This document shows, piece by piece, positions 4,371 to 31,126 of a stretch of DNA of 64,000 bases. Where the stretch lies: positions 124,001 through 188,000 of IMG/VR virus record IMGVR_UViG_3300042317_001568; one strand, written 5' to 3'. The notes below the pieces were generated by a model. That model saw only the letters and a program-made list of their open reading frames with translations. It had not been told where the DNA came from and searched no databases. Each line of letters begins with the position of its first letter. The stretch's first letter is position 1. Both the position numbers and the translations under genes were made by a program.

Positions 4371-4765
4371 TGCTTGAAAAAGCAGATTACGCGCCATTTA
4401 CCGGCACATACCAGCCGTTTATCTCAACGCAGCGATTTGACATATTTCATCATCGCGTTGTGCGCAACCCCAAATTAGGGCACCCCAAAGAAATGTTTAC
4501 GGCGTGGTTCCGGAACGAAGATGTTCCACGGCCCGTATGCGAAGTCATTCTGTTTCCAAACCCATATGGCATTTATGTCGAATGGGTGCACGTCTGCGAA
4601 GAATATCGCCGGCAAGGTATCGCCACAGAGATCGTGGCGGCGTTAGAAGAAAAGTTTGGGCCGCTTGATATGGGCGGCGCAACTGACGCAGGCGAGGCTT
4701 TTGTGGATGCGTACCGCGAAGCCTATCCGGAAAAAAAGAAACCGCGCAAGAAAAGCCGTAAATAA
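4370..4765 (+). CDS. GNAT-family acetyltransferase
   Basis: acetyl-CoA motif A VHVCEEYRRQGIAT, then TDAGEAF. Confidence 0.75.
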   Translation: MLEKADYAPFTGTYQPFISTQRFDIFHHRVVRNPKLGHPKEMFTAWFRNEDVPRPVCEVILFPNPYGIYVEWVHVCEEYRRQGIATEIVAALEEKFGPLDMGGATDAGEAFVDAYREAYPEKKKPRKKSRK

Positions 4766-22487: not shown

Positions 22488-22558
22488 TGCCCGATGGTGT
22501 AACGGTAGCACAAGAGATTTTGGCTCTCTTAGTCTAGGTTCGAATCCTAGTCGGGCAT
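22488..22558 (+). tRNA. tRNA-Gln (anticodon TTG), CCA not encoded
   Basis: acceptor TGCCCGA/TCGGGCA, anticodon stem AGAGA/TCTCT with loop TT-TTG-GC, T-arm CTAGG-TTCGAAT-CCTAG. Confidence 0.93.
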
Positions 22559-23699: not shown

Positions 23700-24008
23700 A
23701 TGACATTCAACGAACTGGAAGAGAAGGTACTGCAGTGGGCGATAGACCGAAAGATCATCCCCAACAGCAATCCGACAGCGCAACTCATGAAGACGATGTC
23801 GGAGTTGGGCGAGTTAGCCGACGCCACGCTCAAGGACAATCGACACGGCATTGTGGACGGCGTTGGCGACGTGCTGGTGACACTGATTCTGTACTGCAAA
23901 TTACAAGAAATCAGCGTAGCGGCATGTTTAGGCCGTGCCTACGATGAGATTAAAGATAGAAAAGGCACTTTAACACCAGAAGGTATTTTTGTGAAGGAGA
24001 CAGCATGA
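23700..24008 (+). CDS. MazG-like NTP pyrophosphatase
   Basis: WAIDRKI...QLMKTMSELGELA...DGVGDVLVTL...AYDEIKDRKG. Confidence 0.88.
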   Translation: MTFNELEEKVLQWAIDRKIIPNSNPTAQLMKTMSELGELADATLKDNRHGIVDGVGDVLVTLILYCKLQEISVAACLGRAYDEIKDRKGTLTPEGIFVKETA

Positions 24009-24283
24009 TCGATCCAAATAAAGTAATAAATGACTGCGAGCAAGCCGATCATATTATGCAGGATCAACGGGCCGAAATTGATCGGCTCAAGGAAGCCATC
24101 CGCCGCCTCGCTGACCAAGACGCCACGCTCTCGGTGTGCAACGGCAACGTGATTGTGACGATGGACGCCACTCTCACCGACGAGGAGCGGGAGGCGGTGG
24201 AGTGGGCGGAAGAACTCGCTGGAAACTGCGAAGAGTTTGATCGCGTGAACACGCTGCGCAACCTACTAGAGAGAACGAAGTGA
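24005..24283 (+). CDS. LTDEERE-family protein (paralog 1)
   Basis: TLTDEEREAV...TLRNLLER. Confidence 0.7.
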   Translation: MIDPNKVINDCEQADHIMQDQRAEIDRLKEAIRRLADQDATLSVCNGNVIVTMDATLTDEEREAVEWAEELAGNCEEFDRVNTLRNLLERTK

Positions 24284-24543
24284 CTAAAACACAATGTCAA
24301 GTTCCGTCGCAAATAAACGTGACGCTCACAGACGAGCAGCGAGAGTCATTGCGGGCGTCCTTGTCAGGCGGTGCAGGAGGCCCGCTGGTTCATCCACCGC
24401 AGCCCGCGCTCACCGCCGATGAGTGGGAAGCCGTCTGGCTGGCAATCGGAATGTTCGCGGAAGGGCCGGAGCATATCAAGCGACATGAGGAAATGGCCGA
24501 CACGCTGCGCAACCTGCTGGAGCGGCTAGGAGGTGCAAAGTGA
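24280..24543 (+). CDS. LTDEERE-family protein (paralog 2)
   Basis: TLTDEQRE / LTADEWEA...TLRNLLERLGG. Confidence 0.7.
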   Translation: MTKTQCQVPSQINVTLTDEQRESLRASLSGGAGGPLVHPPQPALTADEWEAVWLAIGMFAEGPEHIKRHEEMADTLRNLLERLGGAK

Positions 24544-24848
24544 GCGACACAAACAAGCCTGTGGCATGGGCAGTGACGCCGAACGGCCGCGACGAGGAGA
24601 TTGACTGCGAGTTCATCTACCCTGACGCCGCGACTGCCGGAGACGTTGCGCTGGGTTGCGATGGCGTGGTGTTGCCGCTCTTTCGTCCGAAGCCACCGCC
24701 TGCCACCACGCTCACCGACGAGGAGCGGGAGGCGTTGAATCGCGGAATCGACGCGTTGTACGGCGTGGAGGACGTATCGGATGGTGCGTGCCGCAGAGAC
24801 GATGCCGCAGCGAGGACGCTCCTCGCGTTACTGGAACGACTGAAGTGA
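24540..24848 (+). CDS. LTDEERE-family protein (paralog 3)
   Basis: PVAWAV...PLF...TLTDEEREAL...TLLALLERLK; stop within attC-like site A. Confidence 0.7.
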   Translation: MSDTNKPVAWAVTPNGRDEEIDCEFIYPDAATAGDVALGCDGVVLPLFRPKPPPATTLTDEEREALNRGIDALYGVEDVSDGACRRDDAAARTLLALLERLK

Positions 24849-24895
24849 GAACGATGCGATCTGCGGCGCAGTCCCCTCAATCGCGTGGTTCTGGA
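24845..24895 (-). repeat. attC-like site A (inner stem degenerate)
   Basis: GTGAGAAC-gat-GCGAT-CTGCGG...ATCGC-gtg-GTTCTGGA. Confidence 0.6.
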
Positions 24896-24906
24896 GACAC
24901 ACACAC

Positions 24907-25074
24907 ATGACAATCACTCAAATAATCGGTGCTGCACTGATCGCATCCCCCTTTGCGGGCGTTGCGGTGTTGTGCCACATGCACGGCGGCTGGCCCGCCG
25001 TTGCTGTAGTGTTTGGGGCGAGCGGAGCCGTTGTTGCTGTTATCGCACTTGGGTGCCGACTTCTGGTTCCATAA
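24907..25074 (+). CDS. 55-aa two-helix membrane protein (cassette 1; below ORF-track cutoff)
   Basis: MTITQIIGAALIASPFAGVAVLCHMHGGWPAVAVVFGASGAVVAVIALGCRLLVP; GGAG SD; TAA inside the TAAC box of site B. Confidence 0.7.
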   Translation: MTITQIIGAALIASPFAGVAVLCHMHGGWPAVAVVFGASGAVVAVIALGCRLLVP

Positions 25075-25119
25075 CGCTTGCGATCTGCGGCTCGTCCGCA
25101 GCATCGCGTGGTTCTCTCA
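25068..25119 (-). repeat. attC-like site B
   Basis: TAAC-gctt-GCGAT-CTGCGG-ctcg-t-CCGCAG-c-ATCGC-gtg-GTT. Confidence 0.8.
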
Positions 25120-25137
25120 GGGAGTCTGGTGCGATCA

Positions 25138-25326
25138 ATGAGATGGTTCATCTGCAAAAACCACAGCGGCGAGAAGTTTGTGAAACGCTGGTACGCGATC
25201 TGGCCGGTGACGGTCAAGGGTGAGACGCGATGGTTGGAGTGGGTCGCCGTGGAATACCGGAGGGTGTTCTACGTCGGCAAGGATCACATTCAGCACGGGG
25301 AGCAGGCGGTTCGGTTTGTGAGTTGA
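25138..25326 (+). CDS. hypothetical protein (cassette 2)
   Basis: MRWFICK...WPVTVKGETRWLE; TGA within the left box of site C. Confidence 0.65.
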   Translation: MRWFICKNHSGEKFVKRWYAIWPVTVKGETRWLEWVAVEYRRVFYVGKDHIQHGEQAVRFVS

Positions 25327-25415
25327 GAGAACACGCAGGATCAGGAGCGGCGAACAATGAGCGATGACAACACGCAGGACGGTGCCGAGCCGTCTCCTGC
25401 ATCCGCTGGTTATCC
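25324..25415 (-). repeat. attC-like site C (loop contains the ATG of the next gene)
   Basis: GAAC-acgca-GGAT-CAGGAG-CGGC...GCCG-t-CTCCTG-c-ATCC-gctg-GTT. Confidence 0.8.
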
Positions 25416-25590
25416 GCAGCAAGTCGCCTGCGACGCTTGCGGTGGTTCTGGAAAGTTCTGCGTAGGGGAGACATTGGTCAGCCGCGACATGGCGATAGAC
25501 GCAGAGTGTCCGTCGCTTGAGGGCACGCACTACGAGTACGAGTTCGCGCGGTGCCCGGCTTGCGGCGGCGACGGTTGGGTTCTTGGATAA
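25357..25590 (+). CDS. DnaJ-type CxxCxGxG zinc-finger protein (cassette 3)
   Basis: CDACGGSG and CPACGGDG; starts inside site C; TAA within the TAAC of site D. Confidence 0.7.
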   Translation: MSDDNTQDGAEPSPASAGYPQQVACDACGGSGKFCVGETLVSRDMAIDAECPSLEGTHYEYEFARCPACGGDGWVLG

Positions 25591-25644
25591 CGACAAGGAT
25601 AAGCGGCGGCTTCGCCGTCCGCTTCATCCGCTGGTTCTGCGTCA
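25585..25644 (-). repeat. attC-like site D
   Basis: TAAC-gacaa-GGAT-AAGCGG-CGGC-ttc-GCCG-t-CCGCTT-c-ATCC-gctg-GTT. Confidence 0.85.
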
Positions 25645-25657
25645 AACGAGGTGAGAC

Positions 25658-25903
25658 ATGAGAACGCTTGAAGACGAAGAAGACCCCTTCATTCCGACTC
25701 CGTCAGAGGCTCGTCGCTTCGGGCGGCTGGACAAGATGCCGGAACATAAGCGACTGAAGGCGACAGTGCGGATGTTTTTGGATGCGATCAGGTGTGTGCC
25801 GATGCGGGCGATTGACTGCGATCAACTTCTGGTAAGTGAACTGTTGAACCGTCTGCACGATGAAACAAAACCAAACCGCAAGAAGAAGCGTCGCGCAAAG
25901 TGA
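25658..25903 (+). CDS. hypothetical protein (cassette 4)
   Basis: GAGGTG SD; TGA at the left edge of site E. Confidence 0.65.
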   Translation: MRTLEDEEDPFIPTPSEARRFGRLDKMPEHKRLKATVRMFLDAIRCVPMRAIDCDQLLVSELLNRLHDETKPNRKKKRRAK

Positions 25904-25994
25904 CGCAGAACGCCAGAGATGAATGGCTGCGAACACAGGAGCATGACACATGACAGACGAAAATGAGCAGTCCATTCCATCGCGTGGTTCTCAC
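25901..25994 (-). repeat. attC-like site E (loop contains SD and ATG of the next gene)
   Basis: GAAC-gccaga-GAT-GAATGG-CTGC...GCAG-t-CCATTC-c-ATC-gcgtg-GTT. Confidence 0.8.
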
Positions 25995-26261
25995 GGGGAG
26001 CCGTGCGCGTGGGCTGTGGTGCTTGCTGACGGCCAGCGAATCTACGATGTCTATGGCATCGAAGAAGAGGCCAAGGCGATTGACGAGGCAGTTACTGGGA
26101 ATCACGGCATCGTCCCGCTCTACCGCTCTCCCACGCTCACCGACGAGGAACGCGAGGCGCTTGCTGAAGCGATTGGAGCCTACAACGACAACGACGACGA
26201 CGAGGAATGTGCTAAGATTGCGGCCACGCTTCACGGCTTACTGAAGCGGCTGGGCGGTTAA
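25950..26261 (+). CDS. LTDEERE-family protein (paralog 4)
   Basis: EPCAWAV...VPLYR.PTLTDEEREAL...ATLHGLLKRLGG; starts inside site E. Confidence 0.7.
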   Translation: MTDENEQSIPSRGSHGEPCAWAVVLADGQRIYDVYGIEEEAKAIDEAVTGNHGIVPLYRSPTLTDEEREALAEAIGAYNDNDDDEECAKIAATLHGLLKRLGG

Positions 26262-26297
26262 TGTCAAGTTTTGTTGCAAAAAAACTAGGAGCAACTA

Positions 26298-27259: not shown

Positions 27260-27841
27260 GTGTTTAGTGCCGCACACATGTCAAAAGCCGAGTTGGATTT
27301 TATTCGTTTGTACGTGCAGATCACGCACAAACGCTTTGCGGCATTGCAGGCCGTGTTGAGCTTGGCGCATCCAGACAATCTGGCGCTTTTGGACATGGTG
27401 CACGCTACAGAATTGGTAGCGCACATGGAGCGGCTACAAAACGATTTTGACGGGCAGATACAGCAACTCCAGTTAAAACACAATATTCCGTCTAAACGTT
27501 TGCCGCCTGCCCCGCCAACAAATGAGCAACTGGCCGACATTGTTGTCATGTCATTTTTCAAAGTTGTCGGCGTAATGAACGCGACAAACGGTTTGATGGC
27601 AAAGACAAAACAAAACGGGTGGTTTAGCGGTAAACCCAAAGAGTGGAATGATCTTTTCGACAAGCTGGCGACCGACTTACCCGAAAACCAAATGGATTCG
27701 GCGCTGTCGCCTTATCTAAAATCTGTCGCCAAGTTTTTTCCAAAATATTATCCCCCCGGGAACTGGTCAAAGTTGTTTCCGCCTCCGCAGCAAGAATTTT
27801 ACGAAGACGACGAATACGACGAAGAGTGGGACAACGAATAG
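27260..27841 (+). CDS. hypothetical protein
   Basis: 193-aa ORF with acidic tail. Confidence 0.6.
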   Translation: MFSAAHMSKAELDFIRLYVQITHKRFAALQAVLSLAHPDNLALLDMVHATELVAHMERLQNDFDGQIQQLQLKHNIPSKRLPPAPPTNEQLADIVVMSFFKVVGVMNATNGLMAKTKQNGWFSGKPKEWNDLFDKLATDLPENQMDSALSPYLKSVAKFFPKYYPPGNWSKLFPPPQQEFYEDDEYDEEWDNE

Positions 27842-29031
27842 GAGGGCCTATGCGGCCGTTGTTTGTTTTTTGTGCTGATTTGCATTTGGAAGATGGCGCT
27901 TGGACTTCTCGGATAAACATCTACGGCGACGCGTATTACAGTTTTAAGCAGATCGTAGACCACTGCATTGAGCACAAACTGCCGCTCATACTTGGCGGCG
28001 ACGTGCTGGAAAAGAAAAGCAATGCGGCGCGTCCAATTGCAAAACTGTGCGCCGAGCTGACCCGCATGCAGGACGCCAAACTCCCGGTGTACTACATTCA
28101 GGGTAATCACGAATATGATCGCTATGCGCCGTGGCTAAGCGTGCACCCGTGGCCGACGCACATGCATAACCTCACAGTGGTGTTCGACAACGTCAGCGTG
28201 CACGGCATCGATTGGTTACCAAAGGGAGAAATTCAAAAAGCGCTCAAAGATGTTCCGGCGACTACAGCCGTACTTGTCACGCATCAGGTGTGGCAAGATT
28301 TTATGGGCACCGTTGGGCGAACCGAATGCGATTTGTCGGAGGTGCACTACGCACACACAGTCCTCGCCGGTGACTTTCACGTTACAAAAGTAGCTGAAGG
28401 TACAAACGCGCAAGGAAAACCGATTCGCATGTTGTCTCCGGGTTCAACTGCTATGCAAGACATCGGCGAAGAACCCGAGAAGTTTTTCTTCGTTATTTGT
28501 GTTGACGAAGCGGGCAAAATTGTTTTCGCCCCGCATCGGCTGCAGACACGCAAATTTTTGAGTTATGTTGTTAAAACAGCGGAAGAGCTGGACGAACTGT
28601 GCGCCGGCAAACTGGCAAACGCTGTTGACCGGGTACTACAGGCGGCCCGGCTTTACGTTCCGCCAGAACTAGCAAAACCACTGGTTCGGGTGAAATTCAA
28701 CAAAAACCTTCCGGACGCTTATCTTCGAATCACGACGGCCGGCGCTGACATAGCGCATTTGTTTTGCGACGCCATTGCGGATCGTGACGATGAGAACAAA
28801 GACCGCCCCGCCCGCCCGCGAGATGAAACAAAAAACGACTTACTGCACGCAATCGCCGAGCTGCTTGGCGACGACACAGATGAATATCGCTTCGCGCAAG
28901 AAATACTTGCGGCTACAAATCCAAAGCGGCTCGTTGAGTCGCACCTACACGAATATGTGAAAGGGGCAGGCAATGCAGCTATTACGGCTGGAAGTTCAGA
29001 ACTGGGTGCACCACCGGAAACGGGTTTGTGA
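27826..29031 (+). CDS. sbcD: SbcD/Mre11-like metallophosphoesterase nuclease (probable start ATG 27850)
   Basis: ADLHL, GGD, QGNHE, THQ, GDFH, PGS motifs; adjacent to an SMC ATPase. Confidence 0.88.
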   Translation: MGQRIGGPMRPLFVFCADLHLEDGAWTSRINIYGDAYYSFKQIVDHCIEHKLPLILGGDVLEKKSNAARPIAKLCAELTRMQDAKLPVYYIQGNHEYDRYAPWLSVHPWPTHMHNLTVVFDNVSVHGIDWLPKGEIQKALKDVPATTAVLVTHQVWQDFMGTVGRTECDLSEVHYAHTVLAGDFHVTKVAEGTNAQGKPIRMLSPGSTAMQDIGEEPEKFFFVICVDEAGKIVFAPHRLQTRKFLSYVVKTAEELDELCAGKLANAVDRVLQAARLYVPPELAKPLVRVKFNKNLPDAYLRITTAGADIAHLFCDAIADRDDENKDRPARPRDETKNDLLHAIAELLGDDTDEYRFAQEILAATNPKRLVESHLHEYVKGAGNAAITAGSSELGAPPETGL

Positions 29032-31126
29032 GTTTACCCGCGGCCTTGTCGCCATCCTTGGCGAAAATGGTTCCGGCAAAAGCAGCTTGTTCGGCGCGGT
29101 CAGCTGGCTGCTTACTGGAGAAAACCCCAACTACGGCACTAAAGCCGAAAACATCTCTCAATACGCCGAAAACGACGAGCCGGCTTTTGCGCGACTTGAG
29201 TTTGAGCACAACGGCCATATCGCCGTAGTAACTCGCTGGCTTCGGCCCGAAAAAGAAACAGCCACGATGCTCGTCGACGACGTCGAGGTGGCCAGAGGCG
29301 ACAAAAGCGTCACCGCGGCTATTGAGCAGTTGCTTGGAATTGACGCCAAGTTTATTTCGCGGTTTATCATTGTTGGTCAGCTAGACATTTTTTCGTTTAT
29401 TGACCAACGGCAGAGCGAAGTCGACACTTTTTTTCAGCACCTCTTCGGCACAGCAAAAGCTCAAAAATGCGCCGCTGCCGTAGGCGACGTTCTTCTGACA
29501 GCAAAGCCACCCGAGATATTGCGCACGTCGGCGGAGCTGCAGTTGGTAAGAGACGCGTTGGCTACAAAAATAAAAGACGCTCAGGACCGCGTCGACGCTA
29601 TTCCGACAATTGACGCATTTTTGAAAATGCAGCAGGTAGATCAGGCTATTATCGAGCAATGGCGTTTACGTGAAAAACTTGGCGCAGAGCTTTCAGCACT
29701 TGAGCAGCGGGAAAAAGAGTACGCAAAAGAGCTGCAAATAGATGACGACCAGTTGACTCAGTACGCTGCTGATCTCGCCGCGCTTACCGAGTCCGCTGAC
29801 ACTCAAGACGCAGACTACACATCGGCGAAGGTTGCTTTAGCGCATTGGGGCAACTACAAGACTATTGCTAGCCAACGCCGACAGATTGAAACACAGCGCG
29901 CGGGAATCGCTACTGCTCGAAACGAGAATATACGCCCGGAACCAGTGACGCAGTCGGTGATTGACATGGCTGCGCAAAAGTATGCGCATTTGCATCAAGA
30001 GATCACGCGGCTGCGAAATTTTGTTAGCGCTTTTTCAAAGGCCGGCACAGCCGAATGTCCGACGTGTCATACGCCGACCGCGAACTTACAGGCGCAACTC
30101 GATGAGTCGAAAAAGTTGTTGCCGATTCTGCAAGCACAGGCCGTAGACGCGCAAGAAGCCTTGACAGAGCTGCGAAAAGCCGCAGACGGTTATGCAAAGT
30201 GGGAAAAGACAGATCACGAATTATCGGTACGGGAACAGGCGCTTCAAACATCACTAGCGCAACTTACAGCCGTCTCCCCCCCGACAGATGACGAAACGAT
30301 TCTGCAGCAAACTGTAATAGATTACGAGGAGTTGCAGGCGGCAAAAATCGGGCTTAATGAGCTGCTTCAAAAGCTTCGTGAGCACCGCGCCCAGCTTGCC
30401 GGAGTCGCTACCACAATCGCGGAACGGAAAAGCGAAATAGATCAATCTGTCGCGGTTATTTCTACGACTCAGGCTGACGCACATTTGGCTTCTTTACGGT
30501 TGGAAAAACTCAAAGAGCGGTGTGCTTTGCGGCAGTCACTAGAGCGCGAATTTGAAGAACTTCGTTTTTCTGATCGACAATTAGCCGAGCAGCAGGCAAA
30601 TAGTCAAAAACTGGAGGAGGAGGCAGCCCGGCTTAAAAACTGGACAGAGCAAGCGACGCGCGTTCGGGAGGCTTTCAAGAGTGCCCCGCGGCTTGTGGCT
30701 ACAAGAAATCTGCAGCGGCTGGAGACAGCCATTAACGAGCTGCTGCAAATTTTTAGCGTGAACTTTTTAGTCCGCGTCGCCACCGACGGTACCCCCACGT
30801 TTGTGGCCGAATTTTATGACGGGCGAAAACAAGTTGCGCAGCGGTTGTCCGTCGGGCAGAAAACAGTTTTGGCGCTTGCGTTTCGCGTAGCGTGTAATGC
30901 AATGTTTGCAGAAGAAATTGGTTTGCTTGCGCTCGACGAGCCTACCGCTGCTTTGGATTCTGTGCGTATTCAAGCGCTCGCTCCGGTTCTGGAAAAGCTA
31001 CGAGAACTATCGACGGCAAAAGGGTTACAATGTCTATTGGTGACGCACGCGTCTTCTTTGTCGCATTTGTTTGAGTCGACGATAGAACTCGAAGCACCGG
31101 AAACCCGCCATGTCAAAAAATTATGA
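28973..31126 (+). CDS. sbcC: SbcC/Rad50-like SMC ATPase
   Basis: GENGSGKS Walker A, coiled coils, CPTC zinc hook, LSVGQ signature, LDEPT Walker B, VTH. Confidence 0.92.
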   Translation: MQLLRLEVQNWVHHRKRVCEFTRGLVAILGENGSGKSSLFGAVSWLLTGENPNYGTKAENISQYAENDEPAFARLEFEHNGHIAVVTRWLRPEKETATMLVDDVEVARGDKSVTAAIEQLLGIDAKFISRFIIVGQLDIFSFIDQRQSEVDTFFQHLFGTAKAQKCAAAVGDVLLTAKPPEILRTSAELQLVRDALATKIKDAQDRVDAIPTIDAFLKMQQVDQAIIEQWRLREKLGAELSALEQREKEYAKELQIDDDQLTQYAADLAALTESADTQDADYTSAKVALAHWGNYKTIASQRRQIETQRAGIATARNENIRPEPVTQSVIDMAAQKYAHLHQEITRLRNFVSAFSKAGTAECPTCHTPTANLQAQLDESKKLLPILQAQAVDAQEALTELRKAADGYAKWEKTDHELSVREQALQTSLAQLTAVSPPTDDETILQQTVIDYEELQAAKIGLNELLQKLREHRAQLAGVATTIAERKSEIDQSVAVISTTQADAHLASLRLEKLKERCALRQSLEREFEELRFSDRQLAEQQANSQKLEEEAARLKNWTEQATRVREAFKSAPRLVATRNLQRLETAINELLQIFSVNFLVRVATDGTPTFVAEFYDGRKQVAQRLSVGQKTVLALAFRVACNAMFAEEIGLLALDEPTAALDSVRIQALAPVLEKLRELSTAKGLQCLLVTHASSLSHLFESTIELEAPETRHVKKL

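Follow-up and report, generated by a model that had tools for sequence, protein, structure and literature searches.

A likely array of integron-type attC sites with putative translation starts inside the long sites in the genome of a lake phage

The window analyzed here is a stretch of 64,000 nucleotides, comprising bases 124001–188000 of a single virus record (IMGVR_UViG_3300042317_001568) of 205,010 bases, which is rated as complete by CheckV. All large ORFs of the window are located on the + strand. The family-A DNA polymerase of the phage shares only about 24% identity with known phage polymerases, so that no annotated relative could be used, and no DNA match to the region was found in a public phage collection using near and distant search modes. 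The stretch 24005–26261 of the window is G+C-rich throughout, with a G+C content of 0.587 in the interval 24001–26000 compared to 0.486 and 0.505 in the flanking intervals. This island includes three tandem paralogs of a gene termed gene E (24005–24283, 24280–24543, and 24540–24848, + strand), which have their own overlapping starts and no sites of the type described below between them.

Downstream of these paralogs, five integron-type hairpin sites (A to E) were identified on the + strand within 1.15 kb (24846–25993), and none was present elsewhere in the 205-kb genome. They follow a common order, in which a left box that ends in AAC is succeeded by about five bases of spacer, an imperfect stem, a short spacer, and a right box beginning with GTT. 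Both the AAC and the GTT triplet are present in 5/5 sites, and the upstream ORF has its stop codon within the left box or directly ahead of it. The 3′ arm of the stem carries a bulged T and a bulged C, which are six bases apart.

Site A (24846–24894) is short and degenerate. Its left box TGAGAAC includes the stop codon of the ORF 24540–24848, its right box is GTTCTGG, and its stem has a bulge of 8 nt. The site folds poorly. The sequence GGAG (24893–24896) directly follows GTTCT and serves the ATG at 24907, which starts the cassette gene A′ (24907–25074, + strand). The hydrophobic product of 55 amino acids is likely to be a small membrane protein, which is inferred from sequence alone, and the stop codon TAA lies within the left box of site B. 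Site B (25069–25117) is also short and has the left box CCATAAC, one bulged C in the stem, and the right box GTTCTCT. It is followed by the cassette gene B (25129–25326, + strand), starting either with GTG at 25129 or with ATG at 25138 after the sequence GGGAG (25120–25124). The stop codon TGA of gene B (25324–25326) abuts site C and overlaps its left box AGAGAAC (25326–25332).

The third short site, site D (25585–25640), is of a 40-nt type with the left box GGATAAC, a bulged T and C, and the right box GTTCTGC. Here, GAGG (25648–25651) serves the ATG at 25658 of the cassette gene D (25658–25903, + strand; 81 amino acids), for which no family match was found. In all three short sites (A, B, and D) the SD-like sequence and the ATG thus come after the GTT box. 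The original prediction, which had placed SD-like sequences at or just past the GTT of sites A and D, was correct in this point (GGAG and GAGG, respectively).

The two long sites belong to a leader type. Site C (25326–25415) has a bulged T and C on the 3′ arm, the right box GTTATCC, the sequence AGGAG (25343–25347) in the left arm of the stem, and an ATG at 25357 in the loop. The ORF 25357–25590 passes through the right arm of the site and its GTT box (25409–25411). This cassette gene C (+ strand) codes for 77 amino acids, of which the first 19 are encoded by the site, and its stop codon TAA lies inside the left box of site D. The remainder of the protein is a DnaJ-type zinc finger (CxxCxGxG), whose first cysteine pair is located a few codons past the GTT box. 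Site E (25905–25993) follows the stop codon TGA of the upstream gene (25901–25903) and consists of the left box GCAGAAC (25905–25911), a stem with a bulged T and C on the 3′ arm, and the right box GTTCTCA, with the GTT at 25987–25989. Its loop holds both AGGAG (25937–25941) and an ATG at 25950. The first 14 residues of gene E (25950–26261, + strand; 103 amino acids) are encoded by the site, and the body of the protein belongs to a TLTDEEREA...LLERL family. No further site or box follows gene E in the array. A comparison of the cassette proteins with Pfam and PHROGs gave no match, with the sole exception of the zinc finger of gene C, and a search of a protein atlas with gene E returned unnamed clusters only.

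The ATG codons at 25357 and 25950 are the first ATG, GTG or TTG codons of their open frames, and no in-frame start is found between the GTT box and the conserved protein core in genes C and E. These cores are the CxxCxGxG zinc finger for gene C and, for gene E, a P-x-AWAV motif which is shared with the paralog 24540–24848. This paralog has its own GTG seven codons ahead of P-x-AWAV and no leader, whereas gene E has the site-encoded stretch at the same place. As sequence features, a ribosome-binding site, a start codon and the first residues (about 15) of the following gene are therefore supplied by sites C and E; that translation really starts there is inferred. The claim that the two long sites hold translation starts held to the base (AGGAG, ATG 25357, and ATG 25950).

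A chance origin of the five-site pattern can be excluded. For a 14-nt motif of the right arm, 13 matches with ≤2 mismatches were found compared to 5.1 expected, and a full hairpin is present only at the five + strand matches between 24879 and 25991. When folded in isolation, the sites show the AAC/GTT pair, an internal loop, and a stem with two bulges, with RNA folding energies of -19 to -31 kcal/mol. The folding z-scores in wide windows are unremarkable for sites A, C, and E, and the structural signal is carried by covariation and not by folding energy.

A search with gene E yielded 61 viral loci, which carry site arrays of this type, and a pattern scan contributed further ones. At least 91 other viral DNA stretches show this design, and after removal of duplicates the detector reported 254 unique sites in 91 viral loci. 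Two or more sites are present in 59/91 loci, with the largest locus comprising 15 sites. The sites are divided into 188 long ones (75–85 nt from AAC to GTT) and 66 short ones. An alignment of 70 different long sites was used to examine 17 proposed base pairs. The AAC and the GTT are invariant in 70/70 sites and pair with each other in 100% of them, standard pairs occur in 96.2% of the cells of the 17 pairs, and compensatory changes were observed at 12/17 pairs (185 cells). If the partner is slid by one to three columns as a control, pairing falls to 27–44%. The bulged T and C hold fixed columns in this alignment; in the best-studied attC sites, the bulged bases are G and T. The commonest boxes are TGAGAAC/GTTCTCA and ACAGAAC/GTTCTGT, and the box consensus reads GTTCTNN rather than GTTRRRY. 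The core consensus RYYYAAC/GTTRRRY is fitted by some boxes only, such as GGCTAAC/GTTAGCC and GCATAAC/GTTATGC, and the same spread of box sequences is seen in the bacterial sites linked to intI. Rfam is not known to include a family for attC.

These bacterial sites were found with a 20-nt motif of the right arm, which occurs in arrays of Pirellulales, Planctomycetaceae, and related genomes. In four of the five motif-bearing Planctomycetota genomes an integron integrase was identified with scores of 429–466 bits, compared to a curated cut-off of 265, and in three of these (L120, L121, and L123) an array of 5–11 sites directly adjoins intI. The bacterial sites share the boxes, spacers, arm sequence, and bulges with the phage sites, which are thus homologous to the attC sites of chromosomal integrons of Planctomycetota. 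This group is also the likely host group, an assumption that rests only on the similarity of the sites.

The bacterial arrays also allow the orientation of the phage array to be determined. The ORFs of the bacterial cassettes lie on the strand opposite to the one reading ..GGTTCT-3′ and are co-directional with intI, and Pfam matches were obtained only for ORFs on that opposite strand (DUF6883 with 86 bits and DUF4345 with 40 bits). The ..GGTTCT strand is therefore the bottom strand of these integrons. According to reviews, recombination of the bottom strand is about a thousand times more efficient than that of the top strand, and this choice is set by bulges, spacer, and loop (PMC8946536). Since the genes of the phage and its relatives are encoded on the equivalent of this bottom strand, the inverted design is real, and the original prediction of such a design was confirmed by this comparison with intI-linked Planctomycetota arrays. 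None of the phage cassette proteins was found in the few bacterial loci sampled, which is weak negative evidence, and an exchange of cassettes between phage and host integrons is not demonstrated by these arrays. Strict box complementarity, as described below for the viral cassettes, was found in only 5/20 bacterial pairs; the detector skipped many of these sites, so that the pairs are not truly adjacent.

The boundaries of the viral cassettes could be derived from the boxes. In 125/157 cassettes, the right 7-mer of a site and the left 7-mer of the following one are exact reverse complements, compared to a mean of 32 and a maximum of 50 after shuffling, and the two boxes of one and the same site are complementary in 47/254 cases. 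Within the window, the boxes of the pairs B/C, C/D, and D/E match exactly, whereas A/B shows one mismatch (3/4 cassettes). This complementarity of the boxes flanking a gene is the signature of a circularizing unit whose two ends make one site. The cassettes have a median length of 289 nt between the boxes and code for proteins of about 100 residues, and a stop codon is located 1–10 nt ahead of the AAC in nearly all of them.

In addition, the point of exchange was determined by linkage between pairs of sites from different loci; the counts are modest and not fully independent. Among sites with the same 30 nt upstream (57 pairs in 25 clusters), the 4-mer of the left box is the same in 91%, whereas the 5 nt after the AAC are the same in only 9% (background 11%) and the hairpin in 7% (background 5%). 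For sites with the same 30 nt downstream (68 pairs in 30 clusters), the 4-mer of the right box is also the same in 91%, the adjacent spacer in 62% (background 23%), and the hairpin in 50% (background 5%). The hairpin is thus linked to the downstream gene and unlinked from the upstream gene, and the mobile unit is therefore formed by the hairpin and the gene downstream of it. This confirms that the site sits at the 5′ end of its gene, as had been predicted (50% downstream vs 7% upstream). The separation of the hairpin from the upstream gene takes place within the AAC triplet, and the canonical integron reaction cuts the bottom strand at that AAC point. In 3/4 runs, contigs from lake metagenomes break at 25073–25075 in site B. 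From these contigs only the break positions were used, as many of the apparent joints stem from paralogs and other phages.

The assumption that a site travels with its gene had to be corrected in part, since hairpins are also exchanged at the GTT box. About half of the pairs with the same gene have a different hairpin, with a sharp break within GGTT. The body of gene E is found behind four different leader hairpins (in L009, L011, L013, and the window), and the hairpin of site E precedes unrelated gene bodies in four other loci (L046, L053, L057, and L064). This exchange is read as recombination of the other strand, which is an inference and the least explained part of the analysis. Canonical recombination of one strand does not account for the exchange of hairpins at the GTT box.

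The long sites of the survey were also analyzed for translation signals. An ATG inside the site and in the frame that reads GGT-TCT across the box is present in 154/188 long sites. This frame stays open for ≥40 codons in 144 of the 154 (94%), compared to 47% and 25% for the other two frames. An SD-like motif lies ≤18 nt from the ATG in 129/144 of these leader sites with a median spacing of 8 nt; 52 of the 129 motifs lie in the left arm and 77 in the loop. If a long site precedes the cassette, the first ATG of its ORF is found inside the site in 85/115 cases, whereas this applies to 0/41 cassettes behind short sites, in which the ATG has a median position of 33 nt past the GTT. The leaders have a median length of 17 residues and end in ..ASAGS, ..ASRGS or ..PSRGS. 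Because all leaders use one frame, a swap of leaders at the box keeps the gene in frame.

An enrichment of SD and ATG in homologous sites had been suggested as a check of the original prediction that the site doubles as an expression signal. This check was run and supports the claim, as an open ATG is present in 144/188 long sites and an SD-like motif in 129 of these 144. It is therefore likely that a long site works as an expression signal for the gene behind it, which is based on a survey of sequences without RNA or protein data. The notion that the N-terminus is part of the gene was not upheld. It belongs to the site, as homologs of gene E bear several different site-encoded leaders. In bacterial integrons, the expression of downstream cassettes was found to depend on upstream translation (PMC11511950). 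A gating of initiation by the hairpin through coupling to the upstream stop, which had also been proposed, is plausible because this stop lies a few bases from the stem and the RNA folds are stable; it remains a possibility and an inference only, since no RNA or protein data on expression are available.

The search for a recombinase in the 205-kb phage genome, which covered three families, revealed no tyrosine, Y1 or serine recombinase. Among about 180 viral loci (about 1.6 Mb), a homolog of IntI was identified in one (L166, 39% identity). Neither intI nor attI is found beside the phage array, so that the criterion for a complete integron is not met. As five attC-type sites stand in a row without an integrase in the phage, the array is classed as a CALIN, a term for clusters of at least two attC sites that have no integrase nearby. 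Most simply, the integrase would be provided in trans by the host in the course of infection, which is inferred, as no recombination data are available.

Taken together, the explanation favored here, with an estimated probability of about 0.75, is that the five sites are integron-type attC sites which form a CALIN in a lake phage of 205 kb; recombination and translation are inferred in this explanation. The physical cassette would be the same as in bacteria, namely C, hairpin, GTTxxxx, gene, and xxxxAA, and the crossover would take place in the left box at AA|C. Its gene points the other way, which puts the hairpin at the 5′ end of the gene and the stop codon in the next left box. The coding strand of the phage corresponds to the bottom strand, which is the recombinogenic one and has the bulged bases in the 3′ arm. 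Behind short sites, SD and ATG are carried by the cassette itself. In long sites, they lie in the arm or loop and are followed by a predicted leader of about 17 residues, which is always in the frame GGT-TCT, has ..AS(A/R)GS at its end, and is fused to a gene body without a start of its own. The data presented above show the anatomy and the covariation of the sites, their homology to sites linked to intI, their inverted orientation, the boundaries of the cassettes, and the frame rule, whereas the action of a host integrase in trans, the true translation start in the sites, and a modulation of initiation by a hairpin in the mRNA are inferred.

Of the rival explanations, the one that survives best holds that the sites are recombined by an unrecognized enzyme encoded by phages and not by the integron integrase of the host. 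It is supported by the arrays in many viral contigs without an integrase, by the inverted orientation and the leader type, which are specific to phages, and by the exchange at both boxes, which is unlike the canonical one-strand reaction. On the other hand, no candidate gene was found, with the restriction that the search of the phage genome covered only three recombinase families, and the arms and boxes match the integron sites of the host, which fits a recognition by IntI. This rival is considered unlikely.

A second rival, which is judged very unlikely, regards the sites as regulatory hairpins that are shuffled by homologous recombination through their arms, as in the promoter-stem-loop model of T4-type phages. 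In its favor, the usual families of site-specific recombinases are absent from the phage genome, the right arm is conserved over 14–20 nt in most sites, and hairpins are exchanged on both sides. However, the breaks are sharp, as the identity drops from 91% in the 4-mer before the AAC to 9% in the next 5 nt (background 11%), and the sequence shared at the AAC break comprises only 3–4 nt. Furthermore, homologous recombination gives no reason for complementary flanking boxes in 125/157 cassettes, and the same sites adjoin intI in bacteria.

According to a third rival, the elements between the small early genes act only in RNA, for example in processing, as terminators or as translational operators, and their likeness to attC is convergent. 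All sites are indeed transcribed in sense and have stable RNA stems (-19 to -31 kcal/mol), and in 52 of the 129 leader sites with an SD this SD is located in the stem, a classic layout of translational control. This explanation is nevertheless very improbable. The arms, the positions of the bulges, and the AAC and GTT boxes are identical to those in the arrays linked to intI, where they lie antisense to the genes, and the complementarity of the boxes across a gene is, like the modular reshuffling of cassettes, a property of DNA. An additional role of the sites in RNA is possible and cannot be excluded.

A fourth rival assumes that the leader peptide (..EPSPASAGS or ..EQSIPSRGS) is selected as a signal for targeting, processing or packaging, and that the hairpin in the DNA is secondary. 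The recurrent composition of the leaders, with an acidic start and an end in ..AS(A/R)GS, on many unrelated proteins and the fixed frame in 144 sites would agree with this. However, the nucleotides of the right arm are equally conserved in the short sites, which leave them untranslated, and in the bacterial sites, which lie antisense, so that the constraint acts on the nucleic acid and not on the peptide. The covariation of the stem at the nucleotide level and the paralog of gene E with its own start and no leader also speak against this rival, for which very little likelihood remains. Three other candidates were rejected: a transposon or MITE, as terminal inverted repeats and target duplications are missing, REP elements with a Y1 transposase, as no such transposase is present, and hairpin promoters of the N4 type, as the sites are far larger and common to bacterial integrons.

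The favored reading, a CALIN of inverted attC sites, can be compared to several known systems. The phage sites resemble the attC sites of sedentary chromosomal integrons of Planctomycetota in their AAC and GTT boxes, an unpaired spacer, two bulges on one arm, and a variable loop, and the cassettes resemble those of the same integrons in having one small ORF each, complementary boxes flanking the gene, and a shared arm sequence. A further shared trait is that the crossover lies at the AAC box of the strand that has the bulges on its 3′ arm. In contrast to the Planctomycetota integrons, the genes of the phage are located on the other strand with the site at the 5′ end, most of the long sites contain SD and ATG together with a leader whose frame is fixed, integrase and attI are missing, and a second point of exchange exists at the GTT box. 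The criterion for an integron cassette, a site at the 3′ end of a promoterless ORF on the top strand, is thus not met by the phage genes.

CALINs in phages have been described by Qi et al. (2023; PMC9892861), who showed that such phage sites are substrates of a bacterial integrase. The array of the window agrees with them in being an attC array without intI in a phage genome of the virulent type. Those arrays were few (17 CALINs), compared to 254 sites in 91 viral loci for the present design. Moreover, for two of the virulent phages of that study all cassettes are described as having one direction, which is typical of bacterial arrays, and in contrast to the present sites no translation signals inside the sites were reported (PMC9892861).

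Translation signals from outside the gene proper are known from integrons as well. ORF-11 of attI1 lends its translation signals to integron cassettes. Fused integron cassettes also receive such signals from outside the gene proper (PMC4670013). As in these cases, a gene without a start or with weak initiation would be translated in the phage through a sequence outside of it. However, these cases are a single attI site and rare accidents of attC loss, respectively, whereas the phage attC is a standard module with a fixed frame, which is used by dozens of gene families. The promoter-stem-loop elements (PeSLs) of T4-type phages carry promoters and are thought to act through homologous recombination. 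Like the present sites, they are repeated expression signals with a hairpin, and in both cases such signals flank small genes of variable content in a plastic part of a large phage genome. Unlike in PeSLs, the breaks of the present sites are confined to 3–7 nt at the two boxes (AAC and GTT), and the boxes on either side of a gene are complementary. The spread of breakpoints over an extended repeat, which is characteristic of PeSLs, is not observed, as the linkage drops from 91% to background across the AAC and also drops across the GTT. No report of inverted cassettes with translation starts inside attC was found in the literature searched. Phage CALINs and attC sites as such are thus already known, while the inverted attC with a translation start inside the site is probably new.

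A bolder reading, which is judged less likely than not, is that lake phages run their own version of the integron, in which the site is a plug-in start module and both strands are recombined. The GTT box would serve for swaps of leaders and of gene bodies without starts, and the AAC box for swaps of whole cassettes. The inversion would put the recombinogenic strand on the non-template strand, which according to the G+C skew would be the lagging-template strand, and this would favor its folding. The phage region of the exposed strand would be one that is heavily transcribed. If this reading were true, a phage cassette in a host integron would be antisense and silent, and vice versa.

Integron cassettes are defined as a promoterless gene followed by attC, and attC has been viewed as a recombination signal that at most hinders expression. 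A site of the attC type which is located ahead of a gene and provides it with a ribosome-binding site, a start codon, and a leader of constant frame would be a new role of attC, and any gene body placed behind it would be translated, as far as can be inferred. The exchange of integron-type cassettes appears to contribute in a major way to the diversity of small genes in freshwater phages, and these phages are linked to the integrons of Planctomycetota, for which few phages are known. This raises questions on the choice of the strand, on a mixing of the cassette pools of phage and host, and on a function of the small genes in host takeover or counter-defense. All of the 24 sequencing runs found to contain the region, in a search across all kinds of runs, look like DNA metagenomes of lakes, and the site motifs occur at very high depth in lake metagenomes.

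The array of attC-like hairpin sites and three tandem gene E paralogs together make up a G+C-rich island at positions 24005-26261 of the window, the G+C content being 0.587 in the interval 24001-26000 as against 0.486 and 0.505 in the intervals on either side. The stop and start codons of the paralogs overlap, and no sites lie between them. Members of the gene E family have in common a TLTDEEREA motif and a C-terminus ending in LLERL. Within positions 24155-26263, the summed contig depth in lake metagenomes climbs from about 5 in the flanking phage DNA to values in the hundreds or thousands wherever a site motif or the TLTDEEREA motif occurs. Therefore, many phages that are abundant in these lakes have the sites and the gene family in common.

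Site A (24846-24894) is degenerate, with an 8-nt bulge in its 3′ arm, and was picked up by the site detector on the opposite strand only. The right box of site A and the complement of site B's left box disagree at a single base. At its downstream end (26255-26275), the array has no left box, the AAC-ending part of a site. The gene E homologs in relatives terminate with GGC TGAGAAC followed by a hairpin, and the frame of gene E in the window extends by one codon into GGTTAAT and phage DNA of low G+C content. This end may represent a degraded end of the array or an old insertion point.

Long sites that lack an ATG in the fixed GGT-TCT frame (e.g., L052:5425-5520) form a third class, which resembles the loop of bacterial attC sites. 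In some of these sites an ATG in another frame opens a short ORF that ends with TGATG and overlaps the real start codon. Judged from sequence alone, this ORF resembles a coupled leader ORF.

An IntI-like gene was found in a single viral locus, L166 (positions 1926-2909), located 1.5 kb from a site at 4440-4530. Its product shows 39% identity to a Planctomycetota IntI over 332 residues. The locus might derive from a prophage, from a fragment of bacterial DNA or from a phage that carries its own integron integrase. Phage-type arrays with leader sites were also present on seven MAG-binned contigs (L071, L075, L080, L085, L091, L092, and L096), whose assigned taxa are unrelated (Cyanobium, Beijerinckiaceae, Methylocystis, Pirellulales and an unclassified bacterium). 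As these are probably phage contigs caught in binning, they provide poor evidence for a host.

Regarding the neighboring genes, a tRNA-Gln gene (anticodon TTG, 22488-22558) precedes the island by 1.5 kb. A pair of genes encoding SbcD-like and SbcC-like nucleases (27826-31126) follows shortly after the array region; the only relatives of the SbcD-like protein are distant ones (30-31% identity) encoded on two other viral contigs.
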